From contig NC_088860.1 in the NCBI RefSeq assembly GCF_963853765.1, positions 34,348,001 through 34,412,000 of the forward strand: 64,000 nt of DNA, written 5' to 3'. Both the position numbers and the translations under genes were made by a program. The notes beneath the pieces were generated by a model. The model saw nothing but the letters and a program-made list of their open reading frames with translations, was not told where the DNA came from and ran no database searches. Of this stretch, positions 391 to 48,748 are shown in pieces (position 1 is the first letter of the stretch; each line of letters opens with the position of its first letter). Origin of the DNA: Magallana gigas (taxonomy: Eukaryota).

Positions 391-958
391 TTTTAAAAGA
401 TTGATGTTAAAAATTAAATCAAATGTCAACTGAATGAATGTGATGTGACGCAATAGAACACTTTTTCCACAATGTAAACACGGCGGATCTAAGCCACGCG
501 GGCGCGGTTATACAAGATTGAGATGCGTAGTGAATGGATAGGTGTTACATGACTGGTTAAAATGACAGCATTTCGCTTAAGAAAAATCAGTGCTGCATAA
601 AAACAATGCGGCCGGGTTACTGTTTGCTAAGAAATAAACACGCCAGGTTAAATTCTTGTCGCGAGCTGCCAATTTAAGATGTTGGAAGGCCGGCCACGCT
701 GGATTTACTGATGCACATTCTCATGCTGTTTTGAATTGCATGTGGTTAGACACCGATTCTTTACCGTGCATTTGTGGATTACACGAACGGAAAAGTCTGA
801 AATGAATTCAGGTCAGTCATGTATTTCAGCCAAGTCGGCTAAGAAAAAAAACCAAAAACCGAGCTGAGAGAAAATGTAAACAAAATTGAAATAAAATCGG
901 GGTCAAGGAAGATAGAGTTATCCTTCCTAGAACTTCACAAAGCATTGTCATAGGTTGC

Positions 959-1040
959 TACGAAAGCCGAGAAGGATCATTCGAGATTCGAAATACGAGA
1001 TTCGAATTACGAGATTCGAAATTCGAGATTCGAGATTCAA
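959..1040 (+). repeat. Left TIR with subterminal heptamer array (TTCGAGA/TTCGAAA/TACGAGA)
   Basis: About 8 tandem 7-mers directly after the 22-bp terminal motif, mirrored at 14815-14888. Confidence 0.9.
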
Positions 1041-1373
1041 TAACTGTAACCAACCAATGAAATGTTTTCAAACAGAAGGTATAAGCAATATCCAATCAAA
1101 TGCCGTATCTTATAATGTCGGCAAATTGATCGCCTTAAATAAAAGTCATGGAACCTCATAAAATAAGTATCACAGATGGACTCAAAGAATACAGCTTTAT
1201 CATAAGGCAGAACACATTTTGCCTAGATGAACTAGGTAAGTCAAAATGCACCATCGCATGTGTGAAGATGGTCCTACCCAAATTTACGTTTTCATTTCTA
1301 TTTGCCAGAATTACTTGGCACACTTGAAATTTCTGCACGTGTTACGACCTTGTCATGCTGTACTTTTTTCCCG

Positions 1374-2324
1374 TACGCGGGGGTGTTAAGGAAGCATATG
1401 GGCAATTTAGCGTCTTAATTTGACTGTTATATTCAAAATCGTGAAATTAAATAACTATTTTGAATACGATCAAAAACTAACTATTATCCTTTGAAATAGA
1501 TGTAAGTGCAAAAAAATCGGGTAGTATATTACTGCCACATTGGTGCATTATCACGTGACAACTATAAATAGCTTACGTATATTCCTTAACATAAAATGAG
1601 ATAGAACAACACTACCCCGCGGTTTACAAAATAAAATAAATAAACCAAGTGAAGGCAAAACATCTCAGTTTAATCAAAACTGCTGCTAGAATCCAATGTT
1701 TTTCTTAATTCAATAGTTATTCATCCAGTTCTCGTAAAACCTTCCCAACTTTTATAAAGTTTGCACGGAAAACGGCAAGTTGCATCAAAACAACACACAG
1801 CATGGGATTCTAGCAGCATTTTTCATTTTAAGCATTGATCAAACTAACGATACATATAAAATTCAAAGTTAAATATATGCGGGGTAGTGTTGTTCTAGTC
1901 GGATTTTTATATCGTAAACAACGACAGAGGAAAGCCTGGCCGAAAAATAAAAGCAAATTTACATACCTTTTAGCGAATGATTGATGAAACTAACATCTAT
2001 CCTAGTATTCTTATGTCCCATTCTCAATAAATCACACCACAATATTTTATTAGAGTTCTTAGATTAGTTATGTTTTGAATATGTTTACAATGCTTTCCGA
2101 TCAAATTCACACGACATTCAACTTTTAGTCATGACGTCATCAATGTATAAATCTACGTAATACAAACTAATTTCTGAAAAAAAATTGACTTCAGTATATT
2201 TATTTGCTTTTGGTCTACGTAACGTTGCTTAGATAATTGAATATGTACATAATAACTAAGATTTGTGATATCACGAAATTACATGCAACTCAGAATCCAT
2301 ATGCTTCCTTAACACCCCCGCGTA
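1374..2324. mobile_element. Non-autonomous TIR element (MITE-like), possibly Kolobok-type with TTAA TSD
   Basis: Perfect 28-bp inverted repeat TACGCGGGGGTGTTAAGGAAGCATATGG (1374-1401) and its reverse complement (2297-2324). Second internal 19-bp inverted pair at 1602-1620 and 1879-1897. No ORF. Confidence 0.7.
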
Positions 2325-3356
2325 GTAGATCTTTGATTCTTTTCATAGAACCCCAACCACAATATATCCTTAATTCTAAGTTATAAGTAAGTGTATGCCG
2401 TATATTGAAATTTAATAGCTGGTGTGTGTAAAAGGGGGGGGGGGGGGTAGGAAACGTTACCTAAACCGCCGTACAAATTAAATCTGCTGGTGAGCTGGTT
2501 AGAACAAGGTGCACATTATGAATACATAACTAGTCTTGTGGCTCTAAATCATTTCAATTTATACTCAGTACTGTCTCATGGTTGATCTTGAAAGGGGCAT
2601 TAGGTAGGGTCTAGCCGACCCCCCCCCCCCCCCCCTGGAAAATTCAAATATTTATAATTACCAAACAATACATGTATGCCTAGGAAACCCCCCTGGCAAA
2701 CTCGATTGGTTAATGAAGGCCAAGATCGAGAGAGACCTAGAACATTACACCCCTACGTTGGTTTCAGCTGCACAGGGTTTGTGGGGAGTCCCTCTTCCAA
2801 AATGTCAATACATTACACACCAAGTCTGGGAATTAACTTGTGAAAGAGGTTCATAGAGGTTTATGTTATTTACCTCAATCATGATTATTTACTCTGAATT
2901 TACTCTGAATTTTTATCAACCTTTGCTTAGAAATGTTTTCTTCATTCAATTTATATAGTTCTTTAAATATAACACGATATATAGCTATTTTATTTTATGA
3001 TTGTTGTACAAGAGTTGTGTGTATTACGAGTTTCCTTTTGAATTGCCTCTGCCCCAATTAAGTTCCGTCTGAAATGAAATTATGGTGGAAAAACATCAAA
3101 GGAGTCATTAGCATGGAGGATATTAAGCAATTAAAAAGGTTTCAACATTTTGTTTGGAATATAGAAAAAATGCTGATTAACCTATGTAAGTAATGATGCG
3201 CAAAGAAAAAAGAAATATTTAATTCAGTCATTCCAGGACAGGTCAGCTCTGGAATGTTGAGGGATGTCTGCATTGTTTAAACTTTAAACAGCCCCCCCCC
3301 CACCCCCGAAAAAATTCTGTATCTGCACATACTCTATTTTGGTCCCAAATTTGAGG

Positions 3357-3361
<5 letters not shown>

Positions 3362-3409
<48 letters not shown>
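3362..3409. repeat. (CT)n microsatellite
   Basis: Direct reading. Confidence 0.95.
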
Positions 3410-5195
3410 GTGCCTGTGATGTTAACTGTCAATTTGATCATAATTCTGAATTTCCTAAAAAAACTTATGGAGCGAGTATGCATTTTTTCCATTATACATC
3501 GGGATCAGGGTTCAAATTTAATTAATAATACATCCCAACTTAATTGAAATTGAATTGGTGGGTGTCATGTCATGTATTTACTGAATGAGGTAAGCTCTAT
3601 CAAGGTCTGTGAGGGATGAACTTTATTATTATGAATAGAATGCAATATAATTTGTTTACCAAATTAGGGCCTCATATATCCAGTCATCGGGCATGACATA
3701 TGAATCAATGTAGTCCGACATATCCGAAATAAATCGATCACCAAAGAAAGCATGTTATTGTTTAAATAATTATACATGTATATAAACATGATAAACCAAG
3801 TAGGACAGTTTTGTAGAATGATATAATGCAATGATCAACAGGTCTAGGCAACCTCCGTTGTTGGAGGATAGCTCAATTTCAAGATGGCTGCTAATTTTAA
3901 CCATATATGGAAAGTCACTTTGCATTGTGGGTGAAACTATCCTCCATTTTTGGAGGATAGCATGGGTATATTTCAAAGGTTTCGTGCATATCTTTAATGA
4001 AAAAATGCAAGCACCAGACCATATGGGAAATAAAGTTATGGAAACAAAGTAATGATTTTATGCGGCGATTTGAAATTCTATGTATAGTATTTTCACAATA
4101 TGCTTTGAAAGTGTGTATTTTCTGTGTTCAGTTTAACAAATGACATAGACTATTTACATCTGTTTCATTTAATCAAAATCACAAAATAGTGATGTTTATT
4201 CCTCATTAAAACATTAATGACTTAATTCACGTTTAGAGACACATAATAGATATCTTGATCTGCTATATTGTACATAGGAAATGTTTGCATATACCTTAGG
4301 AACTTTGTAGCTCTTATTCTAATTAATTCACAGGTTATTTAGTATCATTTAAATTTAATCCCCTTCACACAAGAAGACCTTGTTAAATTTTATTAATCAA
4401 AATGATACCATTTATAGATATCAATTATCCTGAATATTGAAAAAAAATGTGAGAGTCTTCACATAAAATATTTTCTTTAAAATCAGCCCTGCAATTATTT
4501 AAACTTAAATATTATCAATAAATATAATTATTAATAGCTAAATAAGGTGATATTTTTATTGTCTAATAATTATATTTTATTCATAGTTAACTCCCTTTGT
4601 AAAAACAGAATTAATTGCCCTTCATCTGAAAAGATCCACCAGGGGGCGCAGACATCTATCCTCCAATTTTGGAGGATAAAATATATCCTCCAAAATTGCT
4701 CAAGATTTATTTATCAAGATATATTTTCAAGTGTAAATAGAATGGAAGCAGCCTAAATTAATCTTTTACCAAAGATTGGAGAGTGCCCGATAGGGCAGTG
4801 CATTTAATACATATAATGATTCAAGATAGTCATGTAGATGTATAAAATCCTAAAAGATAACATCATCAAACGTCTTTGAGAAAGAAAAAAAAATAGATAC
4901 ACCTATATTTCATATCTGACATATGACAGTGACAGACAAGTGATCCTTTTTTTTTTTTTTTAGTTCTGATGTTAGCATTTTTTAGACAATTAGATTAAAG
5001 ATAATATATTTCATACTCAGCCTTATTAATTAAGTGAACAGTTCATATAAGTTCTTGCAGTTCTAGAGTCATGTTTACAATAATATTTCTTAATTACAAT
5101 GTAACGAAGTGATTAAATGATTTTTAATGTATGTAATATAATCTTTGTATATTCTATAATTTTCTTCAGCTCAAGCTTTCCCTGGAGCCACGTCA

Positions 5196-8098
5196 ATGGC
5201 ATATGCAGATAACATCGCAGAAAAACAAAAAATAATAATTCCATCCAAAAATGGATTATTTGTTTCACCAGAAGGGGGGTGGTTCAAACAAAGACGAACA
5301 TTTCATGTAGTCAAAGGTATGTTATTATTCATCATCTTTTACATTTAATTTTATCAAAATTTTAATGTTAATGAAAGATTATTACATGTAATATTAAGCT
5401 AATGTTAATACATGTATATTGCTTTGAATTTTTTTTCGTTGTAAATTTTATTCGTTATTTGTGTTTTTTTTACTTTAAAAGGAAAAGAAGCTGAAAATAC
5501 TAGTCTGAGAGATATAAGAATTGCTAATATCATGAAAAAAATTAGAGATCAGAAAAAAGCATGCGCACAACCACAGAAGGTAATGTTGTGTTATCTGCAT
5601 TGACCATTAGCAATACGTGTACTTAACATAATAATAAGGCCCAAAAAATTAATGAGTTGGTCATCAATTCATGCAAAATATTTCATAAATATTGTGCATC
5701 AGGTGGCTGCATGCTTAGTTTTGGGAGGGGGTCCAGACCCCCTCAAAAAAAAGAAAACTTATTAAGGTAATGCAACAGCAATTGTTTTAAGCAGCAGTGC
5801 CTGATCATGAACCAATGCATATACATTTTTTGGCCTTACTTTTAGGCAATAATATATACTAACTCAAAAAAACCCACATGTGATATGATATATCCACTGC
5901 ATATTCATTGATCTGAATCTCAATTATCTTCCTTTATTTATTTACAGAGAAAGATTGAATCTACATTCTCCTCATATGAAAAGTATACACGGAATCGGAA
6001 CCCAAGAATACGTGTGGGTTGGCGACACTTCAAGAATGGTACTGGTAGTTTTAAGCAGGTTTTTTACAAAGATGGAGGAGGTGTTAGAGAAGTTCCTTTG
6101 CCTTCCCTAGATATTGATATTAGAGCTGTTATTCACCATTTAAAGAAAGTCATGTTTCCCACAGGAGAATGTAAATACGGAGATGTTAATCAGACGGAGC
6201 TGAGTTTGGGTGATTATGCAGGAAAGATATTGAAGAATTTTGACATACAGGGAGATGACAACCAATGCTTTGGAAAATATTTGCAAGCACATGGGCTCCA
6301 TCTTTCAAGATGTACATTTTACTTAATGACTCAAGATATGATTACCTCCTCAGTTGATATTTCCAGTGACATTAGTGATTCTGAAATTTCAGACAAGAAA
6401 ACCTTGGGTAGAAAAAAGACAGACAGAAAACAGGATTCTAAAGTAGAAGAGCTTGATCTGGCATCCCTTTCTGTTCAGCGTCATCTTGTGCCCTTTGATT
6501 TATCTGGTGTTGTCTGTAAAAAAACTAGCTATCAGTATTCAATATGCACGTGAAAATACTTCGAACTATGATAGCGAGAGTTGCTTGATAAAATGTCATT
6601 CAATTTTAGAGTGCCAAAATATTTCGTCATTTACTGAGCAAGTGGATGAAGATGAAGACTACAATCCATGTTTGCATGGATTTTTCATAAGCAGGATCAG
6701 AAAGGTCAAAAGTGTTTTTTGGATTGCAAGTTTGAAAGATCTACTCATAATGGTATTTTAGAAAAGACTGTCCAATTCCCGTCATCCCTCAAAACTGAAA
6801 ACATGGAAGGAATCATTCTTCATGAACCAATTGAGATCTGGGGTTATGATGGGGATAAATGTGCGCTTGGAGTTGTTCCTAATGCAGATGAAAATGTCGA
6901 GTATCAATGGTTTAGAGATGACATTCCAGTAAATAATGGGGAATGTAGCTTGTACATTGTCAACGAACCTGGAACATATACGTGCCTGGTTTCATATGCA
7001 GATCTTCAGCAAAAGTCCAAACCAATCCAATTCATTTCTATTGAGATAAATGGATGTGAGACTTCAGTTGAACCAGCAGAATCTGTCAAACCAAATTCAT
7101 ATTCTAATTCAACTGATTAAGCTGTAGTAAAGGACTTTCCTGTTTCAAAGAAGGTTAGAATTGAAAACTCTGATTTGGTGAGAAAGCCAGGTGATTTAGA
7201 AAAGAAGAATTCTTCATGTGTCAAAGATAATTTGTGTTTTGCTGCTCCTGAAGTAAAAGTTGATGACCTACACATAGACTATTCAACTGCATTAGGATCG
7301 GGGGCATTTGGAACTGTGTACAAAGGCAAATGGGCAGGATCAGTTGTTGCAGTAAAGGCACTCACTGTTACCAAAAGGAATCGGAGTATAATGCTTGATA
7401 TGGTAGAAAAAGAGATAAACATCAGCTCTAGGATCCGTCACCCAAACATTGTTCTATTCCTGGCTGTAGCTAGAGCACCAACCACAATTTATCTTGGTCA
7501 TGAATACATTGATGGTTGTAATATGGAAGATGCTATTTTTGATCAAGAAACAAGGCAGCTGATGGATATAAAACCTGGGGACAAATTGTTCATTCTTCGT
7601 CAATGTGTACAAGGTGTGGCATATTTGCATGCTCTAGTTCCTCCCATAATTCACCAAGATATTAAACCCAGCAATATCATGATTAAAAAGGTTTGTCATA
7701 CTACCAAGCTTTGTGACTTGGTAGTTAGCCGCATCAAATCAGCAAGAGCTGCCAGTATGTGCACTACCCAAATTGGAAATGCCTGTGGAACACCGTCATA
7801 CATGGCCCCGGAGTGTTTGATTCACAACGAGAAAACTAGGATAAGCTCAGACATTTGGTCCCTTGGTATTATCTTGATTGAATTTGCAACTGAGGAAGAT
7901 GCTTGGTCAGTAGATGATGTGGTGGATACAGTGGATGCCATTAAGAAGAAGATGACAGAAAAAGAGCCCCCCATCCCAAATGTTAATGTCATAGGTGTAC
8001 CGGAAGAAGTCATGACCTCTAAAAAACTCTGTGTAAATTATGACAAATTGTTACGCCCAACAGCTGAAGATGTTTTAAAATGTGTGTCTTCAGTCTAA
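5196..8098 (+). pseudogene. Transposon-borne spliced gene: N-terminal domain + Ig-like domain + Ser/Thr (TKL/MAP3K-like) protein kinase; disrupted in this copy
   Basis: GT-AG exons 5196-5316, 5482-5579 and 5948-8098 join in frame (MAYADNIAEK...HVVK-G-KEAENT...QPQK-RKIEST...RVGWRHF). ORFs 6014, 6668 and 7175 share one frame. They are separated by a short out-of-frame stretch (about 6500-6670) and a single TAA at 7118-7120. Kinase motifs: GSGAFG, VAVK, HQDIKPSN, DLV (for DFG/DLG), GTPSYMAPE, SDIWSLG, RP. Confidence 0.85.
7175..8098 (+). CDS. Protein kinase domain ORF (307 aa), C-terminal part of the gene above
   Basis: All major kinase subdomains are recognisable in the supplied translation. 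Confidence 0.9.
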   Translation: MVRKPGDLEKKNSSCVKDNLCFAAPEVKVDDLHIDYSTALGSGAFGTVYKGKWAGSVVAVKALTVTKRNRSIMLDMVEKEINISSRIRHPNIVLFLAVARAPTTIYLGHEYIDGCNMEDAIFDQETRQLMDIKPGDKLFILRQCVQGVAYLHALVPPIIHQDIKPSNIMIKKVCHTTKLCDLVVSRIKSARAASMCTTQIGNACGTPSYMAPECLIHNEKTRISSDIWSLGIILIEFATEEDAWSVDDVVDTVDAIKKKMTEKEPPIPNVNVIGVPEEVMTSKKLCVNYDKLLRPTAEDVLKCVSSV

Positions 8099-8875
8099 AT
8101 GTGCCCCTTTCAAATTGGAAGTAAAGTATCTTGGAACTGAAAATGTTGGAAAATAGTTCGTTTGAATCATATATGAATTCCTTTGTTATAATTTGTATAT
8201 TAAGAACTTTGTCTATTGCTTTGGGTAAGAAATGTCAGCAATACAGAAATTTTCAAAAATCCAGTAGGGCATCTACTGTCTATGAATCTTCTTTTTTAGT
8301 TTCAAACACAGGGCGAAAAACCATCTTTAAGCAAGTCCTTAAAGGTGGCTTAAAGGTGACTTAAAGGAGCTTAAAGGCTATACAACCTTTAAGCCGCCTT
8401 TAAGTCACCTTTAAGCAAGTGCTTATAGGTCCTTAATGTCCAAACTTCTTTAAGCTACCTTTAAGCCACCTTTAAGCCACCTTTAAGCATCTTTAAGTGG
8501 CATTTACGCTCTCTTTACGCTGCCTTTACACTGTCTTCAAGTGGCCTTTAAGTCAATATTGATCAAGCTGAACAATAAAAACATATATTAAATGCAAAAG
8601 CTCTTTTATAGAGATGGGAGGGGGTCATCCGAGTGATAATATAATTTCCAAGGAAGAGGGGGGGGGGTGTTCCAGGCGGTTTTAATCGGCGCTCCATTAA
8701 ACACAGATCGCTATCATCAGCACCGCTCTGATGGACACAGATTGCCGTTATAAAATTCTTTATAATTTTTGGGGGGTTTCAAATTTATTGTAGGTATGAG
8801 CGCAGTCTCTGTATCTTAATATGTGCATAAAACTAATTAAAGTATGTTTGTTTCCTATTATAAAGTAATCGGTGA

Positions 8876-8882
<7 letters not shown>

Positions 8883-8917
<35 letters not shown>
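8883..8917. repeat. (CT)n microsatellite
   Basis: Direct reading. Confidence 0.95.
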
Positions 8918-8921
<4 letters not shown>

Positions 8922-9131
8922 CATCCGGTTATTAAACAAAATAAAGATAATGAACCAAAAATGCATGATTTAATTTGTTAATCGGTTTAAGGTTTGTATT
9001 TTATTTTTCAATTTTCATTATTTCTAACTCTAGATCTGCTAGATACATGTTAAAGATAAAAAGACTCTCAACTGCCTTTGTTATATCGGGCAGGATATTA
9101 CTGCTTTGTTTGTCTAGACATAGTTTTGTTC

Positions 9132-9354
9132 GTTTGTGTATATCTAATTAGAGTCTATTGTTTGTCCAACTTAAGAAAACCCCTGGAACTAACACAGAAT
9201 ATACAAGTTATACACAGCAGTTGTGTCGTGTGCCCAGGTGCATGTTTGTGTATATCTAATTAAAGTCTATTGTTTGTCCAACTTAAGAAAACCCCTGGAA
9301 CTAACACAGAATATACAAGATATACACAACAGGTGTGTCGTGTGCCCAGGTGCA
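9132..9354 (+). repeat. Tandem duplication, 2 x about 111 bp
   Basis: GTTTGTGTATATCTAATT...GTGCCCAGGTGCA at 9132-9242 and 9244-9354, with few mismatches. Confidence 0.9.
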
Positions 9355-10176
9355 CGTCAGGGTTTCTAAAGGCGTTGAATCTTAGTATGTACGAGTATAC
9401 GATAAGTCTAGTGAATAAAAGTTAATCTACATTTGTAATTCATTTTCAAAGTATTATATCCTAGCTCTGGGTTTCAAAGATGTTACGTCTACAAATTAAC
9501 GATACATGTATGTAAGAATAAAATCTTGAGGCTAATTAATTAATGTACCGGTGATCATAAATAGGGGTTGATTATTTAAATATATGTATAAGGGTAAATA
9601 TGTCAAATATACCCGGCCTGGCACATCATACAATTGTATGTACAAGTCATTTGCAATTGCCACATGCAGTAAATACGTCACCGGTAATTGGTAATTTTGT
9701 TTGTTATAGAATTGATAGTTTAAAAATCATGTACATGTACATACAATTACATGTAAATATTTAAACATATTGGAACGGCGCCGCGATCATGAAAACCGGG
9801 AAATTGCGGGAAATTGAACAAATACCCTAATAGTATCAATGCATTTAATAAAAGAAATGATTTCATTTTCTTTCTTACACTTTTATAGCTATAAATTAGA
9901 TGAACGTATATCTACTCGGTTTAAATTTATTAACTAAGAAAGCCTACTATAGTGAACCTAACAGTTTCCATTTAGGTATAATATATTTTTGTTCACTGAA
10001 GACCAAGTTCCGTATTTCATTCTAAATACATGCATGCATGTAATTTATAAATTAGATATAATTGATTGTTACAAACTGAATGGTTTGTCAAAATCTTTTC
10101 AAGTAAACACATTCAATACAGTGATTCAATATCCACTGATATATAGGATATAAAAACGCTCATATATATGTAAGTT

Positions 10177-10245
10177 GCCGTGGCGCAGAGGATGTGTGGT
10201 GATGCTAGTAAACTAAGGGTCCCGGGTTCAATTCTCGCCGTGGCC
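10177..10245 (+). repeat. tRNA-like Pol III module (SINE-head-like) inside the CACTA element
   Basis: A box TGGCGCAGAGG, B box GGTTCAATTC, GCCG/TGGC acceptor-like pairing, followed by a long T run. Anticodon arm is non-canonical. Confidence 0.55.
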
Positions 10246-10924
10246 GGTTTTTTTGTGTTTTTTTTTTTTTCATTTTTCTTTCTAGAACAAAAACCGTTTT
10301 AATACATTTTCTTTCATAAAGCTAATACATTTTGTTGGAAATTAAGCACAATATTGAATTAAATTTTCTTTAATGGCTTAAAGGTGGCTTAAAGGTGGCT
10401 TAAAGGTAGCTTAAAGGTGGCTTAAAGGTGGCTTAAAGAAGTTTGGACATTAAGGACCTATAAGTTGTCCTTAAAGGTGGCTTAAAGGTGGCTTAAAGAT
10501 GGTCTTTAAGCTGCCTTTAAGCCATCTTTACGCTTTCTTTAAGCCACCTTTAAGCAATACTTATAGCTTAAAGGTAGCTTAAAGGTTGCTTAAAGATCGT
10601 CTTTAAGCTACCTTTAAACACCTTTAAGCTATCTTTAAGGAGGACTTAAAGATGGTCATTCATCCTGTGAAAAGTACTTAATTTCATTACAGTGAACTCT
10701 TTAATTGTTTGTATTTTTGAGAGGAAAATACCTTTAATATGTTAAAATGTTGAGATTTTCTATCACTAGAGGTACATGTTGATTCATTACTACAGAAAAT
10801 GGTGCAATTTTTTTTTACAAAGCTGCGCATGCAAGTTTTACTGCATATCTCTTTTAGCATTGTATGAGTTATGTATGTGTTGTTTAGTTACTTTAATTTT
10901 TTTTTTATTTGTTTTATGGGTTTT

Positions 10925-11475
10925 TTGTAGGTCACCTGAGTCAATCAAAGGATGTACTGCTATTTGTTTTTCTTCTATTGACATACATTGACCTTTAACA
11001 TTTGAACATCCAGATAAATTGTTTAAATTAATTCATGAACCCAGGGTCAGGGGTTTTGTTATTAAGATGGGGCTCTTTTGTGATATAGTGGACATGGATT
11101 TTACTCTTTAATTAAAGATCATCCTTTCTACTACTGATACTGGGCATATAATAGGAAAACTAAGTGCATAGTTTAAGTGAGCCAAAAGCTGTTCTTGATT
11201 GGTGAAATTCATGACCCTAGGGGAAAATACTGTTTAAATTTTAAGATTTAAAGCGTTAATCTAAAAACCTTTAAACTGCCTATTGTTTATGTCATACATG
11301 TTTTTCAGGTCATACTTACTTCAATGGGTCACAATTGTCCATCTACTAGACATTGAATGTTACCAAATATTTTAAAAAAAACTTACAGCAATTATTTTAA
11401 AAACATGACATGCTAATTTTTTATCATGTTTTTTAAAATACTCAGGTGACTGTTAGAGCCCTTGGGCCTCTTGTT
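10925..11475 (-). mobile_element. Helentron-type non-autonomous element (HINE)
   Basis: Sub-terminal inverted repeat GTCACCTGAGT (10931-10941) and ACTCAGGTGAC (11440-11450). Ends GGGCCTCTTGTT. Flanked by T-rich sites. Confidence 0.6.
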
Positions 11476-11982
11476 TATATCCACATTCCAAGAGTTTGCA
11501 TGATGTTTGATTACAATAAATTGTTGATTTAAATAGAGAACATTTTAAATACATCTTTTGATTATTTCCTCCAACACTTTTTTATACATTTATATAGCCA
11601 ATACCGTAGTTGGAACATAGTGAGGTCACGATTAAGTATTTATTATTTACCATGGTAAATTTAACTACTACTGTTTGAGGTTTAACTGTGCAAATGTATC
11701 GAGTGTGCCCCTCAAATTAGCCTATCTTCAAGTAAATTTTACCAGCCCTGAGGGATGGAGTGAAACTTAGGATTTACTAGTCTTTTGTTTGCCGAAGGGT
11801 TTGATACGTATATGTACCCTTTTCAGTGAGATTATTTACTACGTAGATATGAAAATTTTAATTTGAGGAAAGAGTGAGGGTGTCAGAACATCACCCTTTC
11901 CCAAGATCCACAAATTGCCCATATGAAACAAAATTTGTTTCTAAAGCTATTTAAAAAAGCAATTTTTAATCGACATTCTAAA

Positions 11983-12498
11983 CAGTCAGGGGTGCGACTG
12001 ATATTCATTATATTGAAAAATAACTGATTATTGTCCTTTCTACTAACTTACAGGCTTACCAATTTGATAAAAAAAATTATGAAATACAGTCATTCATTTT
12101 TCCAAGGTCACTCTATATTTTAAACTCCAAATATTTATGACTGTTTTTACCCTTATTCTAAAAATGATGGATTTCAGTTATTATTAAGTTCAGACTAGAA
12201 ATCATCATTTTTAAATAAATTGGTAAGTCTGGGCGCACTTAATCATCTCAGTTGTGTTACGGGGTGCACTAATATATTTTGGTTTCAACTGTGGGTCAAG
12301 GTGTTTCCCTACACATGAGAGTCCATGGCAGGATAGAATACTATAAAGTAATTGGGTTGGAAGAATTAACTTGGGAATGGAAACATGATGAGAACAAGCT
12401 ATATGTACCACAGAAAAAAAGATGTGTACATTATGTAGTTAGTAGAAATGACAATAATCAGTTATTTTAATATGATGGATTTCAGTCGCACCCAACTG
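11983..12498. mobile_element. MITE with about 60-bp TIRs and 5-bp TSD
   Basis: CAGTCAGGGGTGCGACTGATATTCATTATATTGAAAAATAACTGATTATTGTC matches the reverse complement of 12435-12498. CTAAA lies on both flanks (11978-11982 and 12499-12503). Confidence 0.75.
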
Positions 12499-12625
12499 CT
12501 AAATGGTACATCATTTTCAGTAGAAGAAAAGTATCTCAAAATCATTTTTAATAGTATTGTCTGCAGGAGTATCAGAATTTAAGCATATTCACATGACAGA
12601 AATAAATTTGCCATTATGACAGGAA

Positions 12626-13825
12626 CTAGCCATCGTATTGATTGAACATTGTTATAAACTGGGCATACAGATTACATGCTTCATTTACATTTGATGGTCT
12701 TTGATGATTTGGCAGAATCAAGTTTGCCAGTTCTAAAAAATCTGTAGAACAACCATGTATTGGTCTCTCGGCACCAAAGTTTTTAAAACAGTTCCGTATA
12801 TCATCGGCACTGCAATTGACTTTAAAATCTCGAGCCCCATATGGTTCTGGGGTGAAGAATAAGACATCAGGTTTTCCTTTAGGACTGCAGCATTGTTTTT
12901 TGACCTGTATTCTGTGTTGGTTCCACTGTATTACGATTCGATGTAATTCCTCTTGCAGAAGGTCCATAAAGCAGTACCTTAAACAGTCGATCTGCAAAAG
13001 GTCACCATCATTGAAGAGGTTTGCATCTCGTAAATCTTTAAAAAATGTGATCCACCAGTCTGCAGCTTGTCGGCGTAAAATGCTCCACCAAGCCTCAATT
13101 CATTGATTAGAGGTGCTTCTCCCGTATATGAAACAGTTTTCATATTCCTGGTCATTAAGGGTGTGTAGCAATACTTGTATTTCTTCCAGCTCCTTGTTTT
13201 CTGTTCCGAGATCACATCTACATATATATGGACAGCCTCCTAACTGTTGTATGGTTTCTAAAAAATATCTTGAAACAATTTTAGGGCTGTTGTTGCTAGG
13301 TCCCACTTCAAGCCACATAATTCTCCTGGAAAATCCATCTATTGCTCCATGAATAGCAAACCCGAACGGTTTTAATTTATCATCTCCGTCGATATGCCAA
13401 ACAAAATTTGGTCCAGGTGCAGCGAACTGACGCTTAAGTAATCGTTTCTGTTTCCGTCTTTCTACTCCATCTGGGTCTATTACACGCATACGTTCCATGA
13501 CTTTATCCCGTTGAATTACTAAACCACAGTCGGTAATCAAACGTTTCCAAATTGTGCGGTACCCAAGACATTGCCCGCTGTTTTCTGTAACATCTAAAAT
13601 TGCATTTATGGTATTATAAATGTCAATGTTGTCAGTGCGTCGCTTCCAACCTTGGTTTCTGAACATTCTTTTCAAATGTGGTTCGCTTATTCTAATTCTA
13701 TGAACTGCTAACAACAGTTGTGAAATCTCCTTGTTGGTGTATCCTTGTCGAAATTATCTGTTAATTAGCTCATGTTTTGATAAAATTTCAGGATTTAGAG
13801 CAAGTGTGTATTTTGGCAAAACCAT
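12626..13825 (-). pseudogene. IS3EU DDE transposase (integrase core), 399 codons, two premature stops
   Basis: ATG at 13825 (MVLPKYTL...LINR*FRQGYTNKEI) runs in one frame through ORFs 13100-13714 and 12626-12997. Stops at 13754-13756 and 13100-13102. Catalytic motifs WHIDGDDKLK, RCDLGTEN and NQ*IEAWW. Confidence 0.92.
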
Positions 13826-14312
13826 ATTGGCCTGAAAATATCAATAGGCATGTTCATGATGTTGATCTGTTGTACATTTAAATAATCCTTCCATGCAACT
13901 ACATACATTTAGTTATTAAATCATGGACATTTTATACTATATATCACTACAATAGGTTTGTTTCTCACCTTAAAGGCATAACCCAACAAAAAATTATCAA
14001 GCTGTTGATTTCATGTTTACTTCATATGTTTACTTTCACTTTTTGATTCACAGTAGTCAACCGGAAGTCAATGTTGTTAAGTCGTACATAAAATAACTTT
14101 TAACAATTAACGATACTTTAATAAACATTTACCTAATTAACTTCAAGACAACATTAATAGTGTTGAATATGTCAGCCGCGGCAATGCTGTATCACTTTCG
14201 CAACGAGTTGCGCAAATGGATTAATGTAATGTAAGGGGGTTATGTAATAAAAGAGACAAACACTACAGCTTGAATTATAATAGTTATAGTTATTAGTATA
14301 ACCACACGGGGA

Positions 14313-14392
14313 CACAGGGGCTCGTCACGAAGTTTTTCAACCTTCTATATATACCACTTCTATACTATGAAAAACATAAACGAGCCCCTGTG
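14313..14392. mobile_element. 80-bp micro-MITE with 8-bp TSD
   Basis: Perfect 13-bp TIR CACAGGGGCTCGT / ACGAGCCCCTGTG. Direct repeat CACGGGGA at 14305-14312 and 14393-14400. Confidence 0.8.
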
Positions 14393-14814
14393 CACGGGGA
14401 GTGCGCCTGGCTAAAATGAGTTTTCTATACGCGAATTAGTTGTTCAATTTATTTACCAAAATGGATTATGGTTAGCTTCATTTCGACGAGTAGGCCCCCT
14501 AAATATATCGTTGATAAAGACAACAATGGCTACGTATTTTATTATTATATATGTATTGTAATAGAACACGGGGTAGATTTTACAAAACCATACATCAATG
14601 ACGTTGCCTGAACATGCATACACTGTAAATGAAAAGTTAAAAGTATAGAGAGCAATGTATTTGACTTACCGTGTCTGTACTCTAAAGTCTAACCTTGAAA
14701 CATATTAAATGCAATCGTTTACAATTAACAATTAAACGCGATGAATGTGTTATCTTGTTTCTCTTTGGATTTGATTTGTTTGTAACCTTTTTTCTGATTG
14801 GTTTATATAGATAT

Positions 14815-14888
14815 TGAATCTCGAATTTCGAATCTCGAATCTCGTATTTCGAATCTCGAATCTCGAATGATCCTTCTCGGCTTTCGTA
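14815..14888 (-). repeat. Right TIR with subterminal heptamer array
   Basis: Reverse complement of the left end: (TCTCGAA/TTTCGAA)n followed by TGATCCTTCTCGGCTTTCGTA. Confidence 0.9.
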
Positions 14889-15910
14889 GGTTGCTGATAG
14901 AAATGCAAACACATATTTTTATTGTAAGTTGAGCATGAATTTATTAGATACAAATATCGTAGTGTTTAATTTTTGTTTCTCGGGATGATGGTTTGATGCC
15001 TCCGGAGTTGATTATTTTCTTCGATAGCTACCATTTCGGTTTAAATTTAGCAGACATTTAGATGAAGGTGTAAGTAACAATCCCTCAAAGTTTCGTTTAG
15101 TTCTTAAGAAATTTACTGGAGCTGGAATATTTATTTAGAGGCATGGTCTAAAACGTGGTCTGGATCGACGGAGCAGTCAGAGTGTCAGACTTTGTATACA
15201 TTTTGACAAACGTTTTGTAACACTTCGATGGGTGTGATTTCTATTAGAAATGATGGATTTCAAAGTCAATCATCACATTTCAAGGTAATATAGGAATTCA
15301 ACCATATAAAAAGGGGGGGGGGGTTAAGTTCACCGAAGTGTACGTATAAATGAAACTGGTATACCGGTCTGTTGCACATTCCTATAACATAGTAGTTCTA
15401 AGATGTCAAAGGTCAAGGTCAAAAGGTCACGTTCAAAAGGGTCAAAGGTCAAAGTCGTTCAAGATAACTCTTTACGAGTAGTTTTAGATTGTCTGGCAGT
15501 GAATAGTCATGTTAGGCCCTTTAAACCCCTTTTAGGAGTCAAAAAGTGGCCCCTCGGACCACAATTTTTAAAATGACTCTTTTGTTCCTAACTAAAATTT
15601 GAAAAAGTTTTTAAAATCGGATGAATTATAGAAAAGTTACAGCTAAAGGGCTGTTTTGAACGTTGACCCCTGCAGAACCCCTATTTTTTCAAACTGTATA
15701 CCCAAAAACTTTTCCGGTCTGCGGATTGTGTGTGTCATTATATATATATAAACTATTGTAACAATTCCTTAAACACTTGAGAAAACGAATAACGCGTGAT
15801 TTTTGTTTAACATTAAACCTCCAATAGACGATTTTCATCGACTAATAAAACTGGAAGTAGTCAACATTTTTTAATGAAACTTAAAATATATGTTGATTAC
15901 GTCTATTTAA

Positions 15911-17869: not shown

Positions 17870-18985
17870 TGGGGTAAGATAGCAAGGTGGGAAGAGTAGA
17901 CACAGGAGGTGAGTGTAAGAACAATGAGAGTGGGATGAAAGTGGGTTGGGTGTGGGGTAGAAAGAGGTGTGTGGAAGTGGAGGGGAAAGAGTGTGGATTA
18001 GAGTGGGAAGTGAAAGATGGGTGTGGGGGAGATAGTGTGGGGTGTGAAAGGGATTGGTGTGAGAGAGGGGTTTAAGTGTAGGAGAGTAAGGTGAAAAAAG
18101 ATTTGAGAGAGGAAGATTGGTGTCGGAAGAGACATTATTTTGAGAATGGGATGAGAAAATTGGGAGATAGAGTGTGTGAGATGAGAGTGGGATAGAGAGG
18201 TGGAACAAATGGGGTGAGAGGTGTTTGTTTGTTTGTGGAGAGAGAGAGACAGAGAAAGAGAGGTGGGAAAACGGAGAGAGAGAGAGAGAGAGTGGGGTGA
18301 GTGAGAGGGGTGAGTGGGAGAAGTGAGAGGGATGGGTGTGGGTTGAAAGAGATGAGTGAGTGGTGAGAGAGAGCGGGGTTAGAATGTGGACAAGAGTTCA
18401 GAATGAGAAAAGGGTGAGTCGGTTGAGAGAGTAGGGAAAGAGGGTACATGTAATTGGTAAGAGTGAAGATGAGAAATTGGCGTGTGAGTGAGTGTAGAAG
18501 AAGGTAAAAGAGTGGATTGAGAGAGAGGAGAGAGGGGTGACTTTGAGAGAAAGTGGGTGTTAGAGAGAGGGGCAGGGAGAAGCAATAGGCAATGAGATTA
18601 AGGTGAAATAGTCGTTTGGTTTTGCTGAGAGAGAGGAATAACAAAGTGAGGTGTTAGTGGGAAAGTGGCGTTAGAGAGAGAAAGAGAGAGAGTGTGTGTG
18701 TGTGTGTGTGTTTAAGAGAGAGAGTGTGTTTAAGTGGAGGATAAGAAAGATATAGAAAGAGGGGTTTAGACTGCGTGGATTGTTGGGTGAGAGTGTTGGG
18801 TAAGGGGGGTGTAATGGGTGAGTATGTTGAAAATGTTGGGTCAGAGCGTGAATGTGGTAAGAGAGAGGTGAAAGAAAGAGGGAGAGGAGAGGAGGTTGGT
18901 GCAATGAAAATGAATGTGCAGAGAAAGAGGTGTAAGTGTTGGTGAGAGAGAGAGAGAGAGAGAGGGAAGTGAGTGTTAAGTGAGT
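17870..18985 (+). repeat. GA/GT-rich low-complexity polypurine tract
   Basis: About 1.1 kb nearly devoid of C on the plus strand, a mosaic of (GA)n and (GT)n. The ORFs called here are compositional artefacts. Confidence 0.9.
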
Positions 18986-19577: not shown

Positions 19578-22500
19578 ATGGGGCTAACAACCCTAACTTG
19601 TAAAACAAACATTGTTACAGAAACAGTAACGAGGAATATATCTATACCTGTGGACGAGAACCTCTCCAGGACCACCACTGGAACCAGTATGACTGTGGGT
19701 AGTCAAAGCCACCAGGAAGCAACTTGCATGATTAGAGAGGCACTCAACACGGCCAAAACCAAGGTCAGAATAGGATTTTGGAACGTGCGAAACATGTACG
19801 CAGCAGGAAAATTGGCACAAGTAACAGCAGAAATGAGGAAATACAACTTACATGTGCTGGGAGTCAGTGAGAGCAGATGGGTCAATTCGGGAAGAATGCG
19901 AACAACAACAGGTGAAACTCTATTGTATTCTGGCCGAGAAGATGGACAACACCATGAAGGGGTGGCAGTTATACTCAAGAAAGGAGTAGAAAAGTTCTTG
20001 ATGGAATGGAAACCAGTTAGCAGCAGATTGATGTTGGTGAGACTTAGAGGAAAGCAGGTCAACACTACGGTTTTCCAGTGTTATGCACCTACTAACAATG
20101 CAGATGAAGAAGACAAAGATGCGTTTTACGAACAACTGCAAAGAGAACTAGACAACACACCAGACCATGATATGAAGATCATCATGGGAGATATGAATGC
20201 TAAAGTAGGAGCAGATAATGAACTCTACAATAGAGCAATGGGGCACCATGGTTGCGGTATCATGAATGAAAATGGACATAGGCTTGCAGAGTTGTGTACC
20301 ACCAACAACTATGTGATCGGAGGAACTCTATTCCCCCACCGAGACATTCATAAGTTGACATGGCATTCACCAAACGCGAGAGATCAAAACCAAATTGACC
20401 ACATCATGATAAATGGTAAATGGAGATCATTGCTTGATGTGAGGGTTAAGAGAGGCGCTGATGTTGGTAGTGATCACCACCTGGTAACAGCATCTATCAA
20501 ACTAAAACTGCGCAACACACAAGGAAAGCTTACAACAAGGAAGAGATTTGATGTGGACAAACTCAGAGATATCAAGACAAGGCATGAGTTCAACATCACA
20601 CTCAAAAATAAGTTTGGCATTCTACAAAACCTACAATCAGAAAACAAGACAACATCGGTTGATGAAAAATGGAAAGAAATTTGTAACATATACACTGAAG
20701 CTAGCGAAAAGTGCATTGGCTACAAACAAAAACAAAAGAACAAAGAATGGATAACACCTAACACTTGGAAAATGATCGAAACAAGAAAATGCACCAAAAA
20801 GAAAATACTTGAAGCCAAATCACTGAGACTCAAGGAGAAACATCAACAAGATTACAGTGAAATACAGAAACAAGTGAAAAAAGCTGTACGTACAGATAGA
20901 AGAGCATACATAGATGCCTTTGCAACAAGAGCAGAAGAGACAGCCAACAAAGGGGAACAAGGAAATCTATACAAAATAACAAAAGTAATATGTGGGAAAA
21001 ACAGACCATCACCAAACCTTCCCATCAAAGACAAACAAGGAAAGCTGATAACATCAGAGAATGAAATGGATGAACGGTGGACAGAACATTTTAAGGAGAT
21101 CTTAAACAGACCACCTCCGATCCATGAACCTGAAATCAGTGAACCCGAATCAGAGTTGAATATAAACACCAATCCACCAGACGTTCCAGAAATTACATCG
21201 GCCATACAGTGTTAAAAAATGGAAAATCTCCTGGGAGTGACAATTTAAATGCTGAGCTATTCAAAACGGACCCACTCCTTACAGCTACCATCCTCCAACC
21301 AACCTTCAAAGAAATCTGGGAAAGTAAGACCATACCAGATCAATGGAATCATGGAGTCATCATTAAAATACCAAAAAAAGGAAATTTAAATGACTGTAAT
21401 AACTGGCGTGGAATAACACTTCTCTCCATTCCAAGTAAAATCATGGCTAAAATTATCATCAGAAGAATATCCAAAGCCGTAGATGTCAAACTACGGATGG
21501 AACAAGCAGGGTTCAGACCAGGACGAGGATGTATCGACCAAATATTCACACTGAGAAACATCATCGAACAGTGTACGGAATGGCAGCGACAACTTTATCT
21601 GAACTTCATCGATTTTGAAAAGGCCTTCGACAGCATTCATAGAAACAGTCTCTGGAGAATTGTGCGTTCGTACGGCATCCCCCAACATCTTATAGACATC
21701 ATCAAGAGTTTCTACGTCAACTTCAGATGCAAAGTTGGAAACTCAAGCATCGAGTTTGATGTCAAAACTGGAGTTCGCCAAGGTTGTGTAATGTCATCAA
21801 CGCTCTTCATCATAGCCATCGACTGGGTCATGAGGAACACAACATCAGACATCCCAAGAGGCATCCGATGGGGAACGTTCACAACACTTGAAGACTTGGA
21901 CTTTGCCGATGATATTGTCCTGTTTTCTCACTTCCATCAGCACATTCAAGACAAAACACATAGGCTCCACGAGTATGCTAGAAACATTGGACTGAAGATC
22001 AATGCCAAGAAAACTGAAGTCATGACCCTAAATGTGAATAACCCACAAGGAATTAAAATGGACAATCACATCCTTCCATTTACCAATAACTTTACTTATT
22101 TAGGGAGTATTGTCACAACAGATGGTGGAGCAGACAGGGACATTCAGCAGCGACTAGCCAAAGCGAGAGCAGCATTTAAGAACTTGCAAGCTGTGTGGAA
22201 ATCCAGCCAGTATACCAACAGGACAAAGCTCAAACTGTACAAAAGCTGCATCATACCAATTCTTTTGTACGGTTCAGAGTGCTGGAGAATGACAGAGAAC
22301 GACCTTAACAAACTGTCAACTTTCCACACCAAGTCCCTGAGAAGAATCCTTAAAGTATTTTGGCCAAATACTATCTCAAATCAGGACCTTCTCAGCAGAT
22401 GCGATCAGGAGGATATGGCCACCATCATCACCAGGAGACGATGGACCTGGGTTGGCCACATACTCAGAAGGGACCCTGAATCCATCATAAAGACAGCCCT

Positions 22501-22687
22501 CTTCTGGACACCAGAAGGAAAAAGGAAGAGAGGGAGACCAAAAGTTACCTGGAGGCGAACAGTGGAAGCCGAGATGAAAGAGCATCAGAGAAGCTGGGGC
22601 ACTCTCCAGAAGCTAGCCAGGGACAGACAGGGATGGAGAGCCCTCGTTACTGCCCTATACGCCAAAGGCGTCACGGGCAGTAAGTAA
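19578..22687 (+). pseudogene. RTE endonuclease-reverse transcriptase with one frameshift at about 21210
   Basis: APE motifs GDMNAK, NQIDHI, SDHHLV. RT motifs QAGFR, GVRQGC, LDFADDI. ORFs 19578-21215 and 21209-22687 join if one T is restored (AIQC-LKNGKSPG). The ATG at 19578 lies in the TSD, so the native start is probably MTVGSQ at about 19689. Confidence 0.9.
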
Positions 22688-34869: not shown

Positions 34870-35548
34870 TTAAAACCAATTCTCGTCCTCGTGCATTTCA
34901 ACAACTGTTTTTCCGTCTCTTTGATACGTCTCCTGCACTCGATCCAGTTTCCGCCGTTTGTGTCCTTCAGTCTGCGTATCCCACATCTTCGAACTGCCCA
35001 TTGGTCTGGATACTGGCATCGACAAGTTGACGCTGTGTCAGTGTATTTGCATCACGAGACGACAATACAGACACTGGAGATAAATCTGCATCAATGGATG
35101 AGCGTTTTCTTGGAGTGGTCATCGGGTGTCGAAACGGGGAAGGAGCGCGTGGCGTCAGAAGATCCCGAGAAACCTTCGACTTTGTTGCTGGCGCGCAAAC
35201 AGGAGTCGGTCTTGTCGGCTTTCTTTGGACAACTTCTTCAACCAGGGGCTGCTGTGGTGTACTTCCAACTACATCCGACATAATCCTTGGGTCCAGTTGC
35301 TCCCAATCATCAGTGCCGCTATCAGCCGTAACTGAAACAATTTCATTATGTCGAGTGCGGCGATGTCTCCCCATGTCACTTTTCTTATTCGTGGCATAGT
35401 CACAATCGGCGCATTCAAATTTCTTCTGCCTTCGCTTTCTTCCACATTCCACCACATGCTTTTCCCACTCGCTCTCATTTGCAATCCTGACATTACACAT
35501 TGGACATCGATGGCCTTCCATCCTAGGTGTTGTTTTTGTATTCACCAT
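34870..35548 (-). CDS. Accessory zinc-finger ORF of the Gypsy element (193 aa as is; about 225 aa if one base at 34978 is removed)
   Basis: CPMC..H..C and CADC..H...H zinc-finger motifs. Splice-acceptor-like TTTGTTTTCTTTTCGTAATAG directly before the ATG. An alternative frame continues TQTEGHKRRK...ENWF* to 34870. Confidence 0.75.
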
Positions 35549-47581: not shown

Positions 47582-48591
47582 TTATATGCTTAAATTTTGT
47601 GTAACGTTTAATTGATTTCCAACAGTGTCTTTAACATAATTGTCCCTTGAAAAATCCGATTTCCATCGGCCATGTAGTTTTAATAAAGTATCATTTACCC
47701 CATTTGAAGCTGCAGATGTAGCACCGCCACTGCGCAAACTATGCAAACCAAAAAGCTTTGAATTTTAACCAATAGACGATAGAGCTTCAATCAGAATTTC
47801 TAGCGCCCTAGTTAAAGACAAATGTTTGTTAATGACACAAAGCTTATGACATTTTTACGATTTCAAATAACGTATGGAACGAAAAATGAAATTGTCTGGC
47901 TTATCCGATAATTCTGCAAGCTGCAAATAAAGCTTTGTCCAATAAACAGGACTAGTAGATTTACCTGTACTAGCAATAAGCACATCATTACTTCGTCTAT
48001 AAACATCAGTTTTGCTACTTTCAATATGTACAGACATATACATTTCATGAAATGATATATTTCTAACACGTAAATTTGCTAACTCATTGTATCTGAAAAA
48101 TCCTGCAAATCCAATCAAAAACATAGCGCACAATCTTACACATAATAAATCACGTTTACAGTGGTCATTTCAATACTTCGCTATGATCTGTTATAAAATT
48201 TCAGGGGTAATCGGTTCCTTCTTCTGGATCGACTTGCTAAGAATTCTCTTTCCTCCTTCCATAACCATATGTAAAAGCTTAGAATCACACGGATTATCAA
48301 CACATACATTTATAGATCATGATACCACTTAATACTGTAGAACTATGCCTATACATGTAACACTGATTCAGACACTGACTCATGTATTAGACTACTAAGA
48401 AAAACGGCTACTGTACTCGCTGTAGCTGGCAGATGAGAAACGCAATGCTTTAAACACCAGCTTTGAAACTTCTTGAAGTAAGAATCATAAATATTATTCG
48501 AGTTGTCGCTCTTTCCTCTTCTGATGATATAACGAATGTTCGAAGCTGCTGATGAAAATCTGCTGTCCTTTTCCAAATCCTGAATTTCCAT
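47582..48591 (-). pseudogene. DIRS tyrosine recombinase, fragmented
   Basis: FFRYNEL (R), SKTD (K), GLHSLRSGGAT (HxxR), HGRWKS and DNYVK (Y) read across frames. Stop at 47582-47584. Confidence 0.88.
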
Positions 48592-48748
48592 CCAAATATT
48601 GCGATCCTATATGTAAAATGTTTAAATCACTTTAAATTAAAAACCATTTAAAATGATCAACATTACTGTTTAATTTTTTTTCTTTTTGCACATGGTGCTT
48701 TATAAACAACACATGGAGTCATTATTGTGTAACTTTCGCACATGGTGC

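Follow-up and report, generated by a model that had tools for sequence, protein, structure and literature searches.

What is a gene for a protein kinase with an immunoglobulin (Ig)-like domain doing in the middle of repeat-rich oyster DNA, and whose gene is it? This question is raised by a 64,000-nucleotide stretch of the Magallana gigas genome (NCBI RefSeq assembly GCF_963853765.1, contig NC_088860.1, positions 34,348,001 to 34,412,000 of the forward strand), AT-rich animal DNA full of transposable elements, which is referred to below as the window and numbered from its first letter. An earlier inspection of the letters alone (the sequence-only reading) had assigned positions 5196 to 8098 to an unusual transposon cargo protein with an N-terminal motif block, an Ig-like fold, and a kinase domain. 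The follow-up analysis showed that this stretch covers the large exons at the 3' end of a multidomain kinase gene that is real, spliced, and expressed. This gene is the second, nontransposase gene of a complete transposon of the IS3EU type, in which it lies tail to tail with the gene for the transposase.

The element is 13,930 bp long (959-14888), starts with TACGAAAGCC at position 959, and ends with GGCTTTCGTA at position 14888, so that it has TA..TA termini. Its inverted repeat of 79 nucleotides (nt) pairs positions 958-1036 with positions 14811-14889 at 89% identity, and both ends are flanked by the same 6-bp target-site duplication (TSD). As TA..TA termini and 6-bp TSDs are part of the published definition of IS3EU (PMC10045372), these features assign the element to this superfamily. 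The transposase gene codes for an rva_4 integrase core (Pfam E value of 1e-18, compared with 1e-27 in the active HECT-type family described below), and the matches to rve and HTH_21 are weak. The window translation shows the D, D, and E positions, and no HHCC motif was seen in it by eye. The window copy of this gene contains a stop codon just before the catalytic Glu (13100-13102) and a second one near the N terminus. Published IS3EU elements similarly combine TA..TA termini and 6-bp duplications with an IS3-like DDE transposase that lacks the HHCC zinc finger, encode two proteins (PMC8232023), and are present in animals that include molluscs and acorn worms, the same groups as here. The last 94 bp of the element (14795-14888) recur at 98% identity in at least 10 loci on many chromosomes; these are probably recently mobilized nonautonomous derivatives (miniature inverted-repeat transposable elements, or MITEs) that use the transposase of this family.

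The structure of the second gene could be read from RNA contigs of oyster-labelled runs, whose libraries are metatranscriptomes and may contain DNA. Introns 5317-5481 and 5580-5947, both with GT..AG borders, are absent from the RNA contigs of three runs from three different studies, and exons 2, 3, and 4 are joined within one single contig. The joints were called at 5312/5478 (cut +4) and 5577/5946 (cut +2), which equals 5316/5482 and 5579/5948, precisely the two splice junctions predicted in the sequence-only reading. The gene span of 5196-8098 proposed at that time held for exons 2 to 4 and for the stop codon at 8096-8098, but not for the start, which lies ~4 kb upstream, probably at ATG 1148. 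RNA contigs extend to the 5' side of the acceptor AG at 5168-5169, and their loose ends map to positions 1204-1233 and 3558-3587, with AG/GTAAG donors right after both upstream exons (1235/1236 and 3589/3590). The exon that ends at 1235 is coding, being in frame with exon 2 from ATG 1148 on, and its peptide (..KEYSFII..F.LDEL) is kept at the N termini of proteins of Saccostrea echinata and Mytilus (P0109 and P0112). The exon that ends at 3589 is a noncoding alternative, with an in-frame stop codon right before the splice. Since one contig reaches 244 nt upstream of the exon 1 splice, transcription starts at or before position ~994, in or beside the left terminal repeat. At the 3' end, transcripts extend beyond position 8300, past the stop codon. 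Expression of the kinase gene is seen in many RNA runs, and a public M. gigas protein model matches its first exons almost perfectly.

The transcribed form of the gene is not identical to the one in the window. Frame 2 of 5948-8098, which holds the motifs, is broken by a cluster of stop codons (6551-6668) and by the TAA at 7118, and a second open frame spans 6453-6761. Compared with the window, from which they differ by ~2% overall, the RNA contigs miss one base at 6519, have one base added after 6702, and carry T for A at 7119. The window copy contains, accordingly, two frameshifts and one nonsense codon, and its kinase motif DLG reads DLV. The transcribed form, 98% identical to the window copy, corresponds to P0110, a 694-aa protein from public assemblies that stands for 232 member sequences, stays in frame across both frame changes and the stop codon, and has DLG where the window has DLV. 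The window copy, with both of its genes broken, is dead; what oysters transcribe, and splice correctly, is an intact copy or allele that is 98% identical to it. This intact form is either the other allele of the window locus or another insertion; the assembly holds only the window copy of the element and fragments on chromosome 2.

The assembly has no pieces of this element family besides the window copy and these two fragments. One of them (C2:41167371-41175327) is a rearranged copy of the 5' exons of the kinase gene, its introns, and the kinase N-lobe, with 89 to 96% identity and two stop codons; the other, ten megabases off (C2:30700903-30702455), is a truncated copy that runs from the 5' half of the transposase gene to the right terminus at 95% identity. 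In addition, a public M. gigas gene model of 440 aa, P0117, fuses CUB-like and transmembrane exons to exons 2 to 4 of the intact form. Within the assembly, its CUB-like part matches only a tandem cluster at C4:24.4-24.7 Mb, and at no more than 73% identity. P0117 is either a chimera of the annotation or an indication that the intact copy lies elsewhere in the individual concerned. The idea that the window locus codes for a receptor kinase with a CUB ectodomain, to which only P0117 pointed, was considered and rejected: the CUB exons match that other chromosome, with the low identity just given, and the RNA contigs join exons internal to the element.

The encoded protein of ~830 residues comprises a small N-terminal domain, an N-domain with a predicted beta-grasp fold, a Ser/Asp-rich linker, an alpha/beta "middle" domain, an Ig-like C2-type domain, and a TKL-like Ser/Thr kinase domain, in this order (Table 1). 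The part encoded by exons 1 and 2 shows weak, below-threshold matches to the Pfam family TDP-43_N in P0109 and P0117 and so weakly resembles the N-terminal domain of TDP-43. Neither the N-domain nor the N-terminal 200 residues as a whole had a match in Pfam. A profile of the N-domain recruits 98 representative proteins at an E value of 1e-3 or less, so that the motif block noticed in the sequence-only reading, which is present at 6014-6340, marks a real protein family; an alignment of 48 N-domains produced the signature listed in Table 1. In its AlphaFold model (pLDDT of 88.7), the secondary structure elements follow in the order beta-beta-beta-alpha-beta-alpha-beta, which suggests the beta-grasp topology, as in SATB1 and in UBL/UBX domains. 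The best matches of the model in PDB are the ubiquitin-like domain of SATB1 and UBL domains, though these are weak (Foldseek E value of ~2e-3 and TM scores of 0.46 to 0.56). Among predicted structures, strong matches were found only to uncharacterized animal proteins of the same family, whose names include HECT, SAM, kinase, and integrase.

The region from the N-domain to the kinase was modelled from 14 family members (pLDDT of 79). Its middle domain has invariant Tyr, Ser, Pro, and Phe positions from molluscs to Saccoglossus. This domain had no match in Pfam and only low scores (0.76) in a search of a language-model atlas; in structure searches with a two-domain (middle plus Ig) model, the matches were filled by the Ig half, which left the middle domain without a fold assignment. 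The Ig-like stretch of the window scores 19 bits against Ig_2 in Pfam, under the cutoff of 27, and the same region of the relatives P0022 and P0053 exceeds the Ig cutoff with 32.6 and 33.9 bits. The family model of this region is all-beta and matches Ig C2 domains with VIA Z scores of 7 to 7.8 (values below 8 being middling) and a root mean square deviation (rmsd) of 2.1 to 3.0 Å over 71 to 81 residues.

The kinase domain is complete, as had been claimed, and matches the Pfam family Pkinase with an E value of 1e-44 and 153 bits (cutoff, 31.7 bits) over profile positions 4 to 259 of 263; P0110 scores 163 bits. Its motifs include GSGAFG, VAVK, the Glu of VEKEI, HQD in place of HRD (with the Asp kept and the Arg replaced), and APE, and DLG is kept in P0002 as well as in P0110. 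The motifs of the intact form are compatible with an active non-RD kinase. The closest relatives with solved structures are, by sequence, CTR1 (2e-34) and B-Raf/C-Raf (1e-24), and the other best matches are Raf and plant receptor-like kinases at ~30% identity, so the label "TKL-like" appears to be a fair one. No signal peptide or membrane segment is evident by eye, also at the true N terminus, although no predictor was run. Saccostrea, Mytilus, Mactra, Haliotis, and Saccoglossus all have intact proteins in which the three blocks that the sequence-only reading had seen in one protein (N-domain, Ig-like domain, and kinase) are united in a single reading frame.

The association of the N-domain with IS3EU elements extends far beyond the window. 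A profile search of the 564-Mb assembly (29 contigs, with matches on C1 to C10) detected 46 N-domain loci, and 35 of these have an rva_4 integrase within 25 kb, against a chance expectation of 0.6%. Every one of these 35 integrase genes is located downstream and on the opposite strand, i.e., is convergent. At 28 of the 46 loci, a HECT-like region comes after the N-domain and retains the AHTC motif with the catalytic cysteine. The link to IS3EU-type integrases and the N-domain's occurrence ahead of HECT/G2E3-like reading frames, the latter suggested in the sequence-only reading, are thereby borne out. Continuation into a kinase was found at the window locus only, the C-terminal partners of the 18 loci without a HECT region having been left unclassified. 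The HECT-like regions keep the AHTC..LE.P.TY motif; they exceed the Pfam threshold for HECT in P0042 and P0086 and fall under it (18.8 bits) in the active oyster family. Neither Pfam nor the HECT-region search found a HECT region in the window gene, in contrast to the second genes of the sister elements, which end in a HECT C-lobe with AHTC, as do the G2E3-like HECT ligases. The HECT genes of the sister elements may be linked to G2E3 proper.

The active HECT-type family consists of nine copies of 8.6 to 9 kb that are ~99% identical and share their terminal motif with the window element; perfect 6-bp duplications were found in five of the six copies checked. Elements of this family (e.g., C10:547866-556490) contain arrays of the 21-bp unit GTCGTTATAACGAGATAAAA, ~0.6 to 0.9 kb long, just inside both termini and in inverted orientation, with copy numbers that differ between insertions. 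These arrays may be transposase binding sites.

Kinase-bearing elements were also detected in other species. In Mactra antiquata, one such element was found on two different chromosomes, between unrelated flanks; its two copies are 99.94% identical over 17,588 bp, have the termini TACGGAAGCC..GGCTTCCGTA and the TSDs GGAAAT and TTTATC, and each contain an intact gene for a 991-aa N-domain-kinase protein and an intact gene for a 362-aa integrase. The Saccostrea echinata element (14.5 kb, TSD AAAATC) lies in a tetraspanin intron and has a terminal repeat that hardly differs from that of the window element. The catalytic core of its integrase, 78% identical to that of the window, is open, including the site of the window's first stop codon. 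A right end at position 27094 was rejected for this element because of a mismatch in the duplication; the true end is at 24321. Thus, the window element and its two kinase-bearing relatives all have TA..TA termini and 6-bp duplications. One metagenome contig carries the kinase gene with a convergent rva_4 gene 3.6 kb downstream, and Mytilus and the hemichordate Saccoglossus have proteins of the same architecture. A different picture is presented by Saccostrea cucullata and Haliotis rubra: neither an integrase gene nor the terminal motif was found within 10 kb of their intact kinase genes, which fits either loss of the transposase or domestication. The flanks also differ, with EGF-like genes next to the Saccostrea cucullata gene.

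The second gene has been under purifying selection. In a comparison with the Saccostrea cucullata gene, the N-domain has a ratio of nonsynonymous to synonymous substitution rates (dN/dS) of 0.14, the Ig region one of 0.15, and the kinase one of 0.12, with synonymous sites near saturation. If its own fragment is set aside, the window kinase shares no more than ~31% identity with any kinase of the genome, which argues against a recent capture. The nearest kinases, at only ~30% identity, are three intronless kinase frames of ~333 to 346 aa that lie within 13 kb on alternating strands (C7:33011610-33024264).

How old the exchange of ligase for kinase is can be judged from the integrases and the N-domains. 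The window integrase is 45 to 47% identical to those of the Mactra kinase-type elements and 38% identical to the HECT-type integrases of its own genome; that is, a kinase-type integrase resembles its counterparts in other species more than it resembles the HECT-type integrases of its own genome. A tree of 55 N-domains is divided, with a support of 92, into two halves, one of which holds five of the six HECT types and the other all 20 kinase/Ig types and the remaining HECT type, so that at least two changes between HECT and kinase partners are needed. The N-domain of the HECT-bearing protein in question, P0072, forms a long branch within the kinase/Ig half, which may reflect a second independent exchange or a long-branch artifact. 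The two changes in the tree, together with the codivergence of the integrases, indicate an old and rare exchange and not an ongoing shuffling. On these sequence comparisons, one catalytic "writer" was swapped for another on a constant N-domain, once or twice, long ago. The swap of ubiquitin ligase for kinase suggested in the sequence-only reading therefore stands, and its "modular effector slot" applies on the evolutionary time scale, but not in the sense of continual exchange. None of the three outcomes named there as refuting the reading was observed.

It is highly probable that the structural description is correct as a whole, i.e., that these are two-gene, tail-to-tail IS3EU elements, the second gene of which is transcribed, spliced, conserved, and carried along when the element moves. 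The full explanation, that of a second gene native to an IS3EU lineage that exchanged its enzyme long ago, is likely, if somewhat less secure, and has to be weighed against several others. Its main rival is domestication in oysters, which supposes that the kinase arrived by transposition and was kept as a host gene, for example, as an intracellular signaling kinase of innate immunity, the transposon being a relic. Broad expression of the gene across RNA runs and the lack of an integrase within 10 kb of the Saccostrea cucullata and Haliotis genes speak in favor of domestication, as do the intact, conserved, orthologue-like genes in three oyster species (with dN/dS of 0.12 to 0.15), the dead transposase in the window, an Ig domain that is closest to that of MALT1, and the HQD motif of the kinase; non-RD kinases are common among immune kinases. 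This rival is nevertheless rather unlikely, given the complete elements of Saccostrea echinata and Mactra, which have transposase genes and fresh TSDs and, in Mactra, are nearly identical to each other. Moreover, the loci of the three oysters need not be orthologous, given the different flanks in the two Saccostrea species, and purifying selection would be just as likely on a gene that the element needs.

DNA transposons, including the GingerRoot/IS3EU relatives, are able to capture fragments of host genes (PMC6839031), so a host kinase could have been picked up by an IS3EU element, in the manner of Pack-MULEs, as cargo with no role for the element. Such accidental capture is very improbable here: the kinase has no close relative in the genome, and the best ones elsewhere, Raf or plant TKL kinases, are only ~30% identical; it forms one reading frame with the N-domain that belongs to the lineage, keeps its architecture and gene order in animals as far apart as molluscs and a hemichordate, has the low dN/dS of a constrained gene, and is intact, as is the integrase gene, in near-identical Mactra copies. 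Another explanation would be that of a decayed pseudogene, with an RNA signal that comes from read-through or from contaminating DNA. The two frameshifts, the stop codon, and the damaged DLG of the window copy would agree with that, as would the possible presence of DNA in metatranscriptome libraries, and it is true that the window copy cannot make the full protein. For the gene family, however, this explanation is refuted and has next to no chance: the contigs lack introns at the exact GT..AG borders and are joined to upstream exons, which is impossible from DNA, and the form that is transcribed has an intact frame of 694 residues.

With regard to the service that the second protein might render to its element, the role of an accessory factor has about an even chance of being right. 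The argument for it follows the reasoning on the TET/JBP enzymes of fungi and the alpha-kinase of fungal IS3EU elements, transposon-encoded enzymes having been suggested to counteract host silencing (PMC12730594). The second gene, whose transcription starts in or next to the left terminal repeat, encodes a cytoplasmic multidomain protein. Its N-terminal beta-grasp modules may serve in targeting or assembly, bringing the protein to some partner in the host or to the machinery of transposition. The C-terminal enzyme could then phosphorylate (or, in the sister elements, ubiquitinate) proteins of the host or of the element, a modification that would favor transposition or blunt host silencing or defense. 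A bolder version of this scheme, which is put forward only tentatively and is more likely wrong than right, holds that animal IS3EU elements carry a host-manipulation protein that combines a constant beta-grasp adaptor with swapped writers, either HECT or Ig plus TKL kinase. It would act on chromatin, DNA-repair, or innate-immune factors of the host or on the transposase, thereby licensing transposition, as an animal counterpart of the fungal TET/JBP and alpha-kinase proteins; in some hosts, possibly oysters, the kinase might be becoming a host gene.

Several points weigh against the full explanation. HRD is replaced by HQD, and the activity of the kinase is assumed from its motifs only; the accessory role itself is argued by analogy. 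The window copy, single in the assembly and broken, is no mobile unit at present. No position in the assembly was found for the intact transcribed copy, and P0117 joins this copy to CUB and transmembrane exons. The Saccostrea cucullata and Haliotis rubra genes stand without a neighboring integrase. Finally, complex prediction for the Mactra transposase with the N-domain of P0018 gave scores of 0.32, 0.00, and 0.00, compared with a mark of 0.34, a result that weighs neither way.

Table 1. Positions of the IS3EU element, its two genes, the encoded domains, and nested repeats in the window
Feature	Positions	Strand	Remarks
Left target-site duplication	953..958	.	GGTTGC; identical hexamer flanks both termini
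Left terminal inverted repeat	959..1040	+	Subterminal 7/14-bp ATTCGAG repeats; Saccostrea echinata element has same terminus and pattern
Exon 1a, kinase gene	994..1235	+	Likely start ATG 1148; GT donor 1236; 5' limit approximate
Nested high-copy repeat, ~950 bp	1374..2325	.	In intron 1; at least 40 genome copies, 93-98% identity
Alternative noncoding exon 1b	3480..3589	+	In-frame stop before splice; GT donor 3590; 5' limit approximate
Exon 2	5170..5316	+	Contains ATG 5196; with exon 1a forms small N-terminal domain
Exon 3	5482..5579	+	GT..AG joints in three RNA runs
Exon 4	5948..8098	+	N-domain, middle domain, Ig-like domain, kinase; stop 8096-8098
N-domain, predicted beta-grasp (ubiquitin-like)	6005..6340	+	Common to HECT-type second genes; GWxH..GGGxR..FFPxG..LYLxT
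Conserved alpha/beta middle domain	6485..6778	+	~100 residues between linker and Ig-like domain
Out-of-frame stretch	6519..6702	+	One-base indel at each end versus transcribed form
Ig-like C2-type domain	~6803..7051	+	Pfam in relatives; fold of family model
In-frame TAA	7118..7120	+	Sense codon in transcribed form
Protein kinase domain, TKL-like	7283..8080	+	GSGAFG, VAVK, HQD, APE; DLV here, DLG in intact form
Nested repeat 3' of kinase gene	8290..10640	.	11-bp CTTTAAGCCAC arrays at both ends, inverted; inverted repeat 97%
Nested MITE-like repeat, ~520 bp	11980..12500	.	
IS3EU transposase	12626..13800	-	rva_4 integrase core and HTH-like N-terminal part; convergent with kinase gene
Right terminal inverted repeat	14811..14888	-	Ends with GGCTTTCGTA
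Right target-site duplication	14889..14894	.	GGTTGC

Four unrelated repeats are nested in the window element. In the one located 3' of the kinase gene, a repeat with very many near-identical copies in the genome, the CTTTAAGCCAC arrays occupy positions 8290-8550 and 10370-10640, ~1.9 kb apart. Outside the element, the window contains a retrotransposon of the long interspersed nuclear element (LINE) type (19578-22687, plus strand), which looks intact and has two adjoining frames of 545 and 492 aa with endonuclease/exonuclease/phosphatase and reverse transcriptase domains. Just upstream of it, at 18200-18700, there are GA-rich simple repeats with a strong GC skew. A Gypsy-type long terminal repeat retrotransposon (35650-40770, minus strand) has an uninterrupted gag-pol frame of 1706 aa with a zinc knuckle, aspartyl protease, reverse transcriptase, RNase H, and an integrase with H2C2; it is adjoined by a 193-aa C2H2 zinc-finger frame (34967-35548, minus strand). 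The reverse transcriptase and Dam-like adenine methyltransferase frames at 47855-51303 (minus strand) have a DIRS-like make-up and are broken into several frames.

Compared with the published animal IS3EU elements, the ones described here are large (8.6 to 17.6 kb), with multiexon second genes and subterminal short tandem repeats, and their second protein is defined as a beta-grasp N-domain combined with either a HECT-like ligase or an Ig-like domain and a TKL-like kinase. In fungi, IS3EU elements carry an alpha-kinase gene opposite to that of the transposase, and some of them also encode a TET/JBP dioxygenase (PMC12730594). In terms of kinase class and layout, the antiparallel arrangement of the two genes is common to both, but the fungal enzyme is an atypical (alpha) kinase, and the animal one is a classical Pkinase with Ig-like and beta-grasp domains. 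The canonical subdomains of TKL kinases (Raf and CTR1/MAP3K-like) are present in the window kinase, at ~30% identity; unlike these enzymes, it has no Ras-binding or C1 domains, reads HQD for HRD, and is fused to the Ig-like and beta-grasp domains. The structural match of the highest identity for the Ig-like domain is the Ig-like C2 domain of MALT1 (31 to 32%, rmsd of 2.5 to 2.7 Å), likewise an Ig domain in a cytoplasmic signaling protein. In contrast to MALT1, the window protein has a single Ig domain and neither a death nor a caspase-like domain. The literature search found no paper on the second protein of animal IS3EU elements or on their link to HECT or classical kinases; Repbase notes and Kojima 2019 were outside this search, and a prior mention there is possible.

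The structure and function of the IS3EU superfamily have been described as "largely unexplored" (PMC11934779). The results presented here provide an identity for the second gene of animal IS3EU elements, which is expressed and under purifying selection, and indicate that, in a lineage of cut-and-paste transposons, a protein kinase took the place of a ubiquitin ligase behind a common N-terminal module. They also offer a partial explanation of why invertebrate genome annotations list so many orphan kinases and "G2E3-like" HECT genes. Annotators are thereby warned that genes of this kind belong to transposons and that models like P0117 may be chimeras. With recently active elements now defined, nine copies in the oyster and at least two in Mactra, the role of transposon-encoded signaling enzymes becomes testable.

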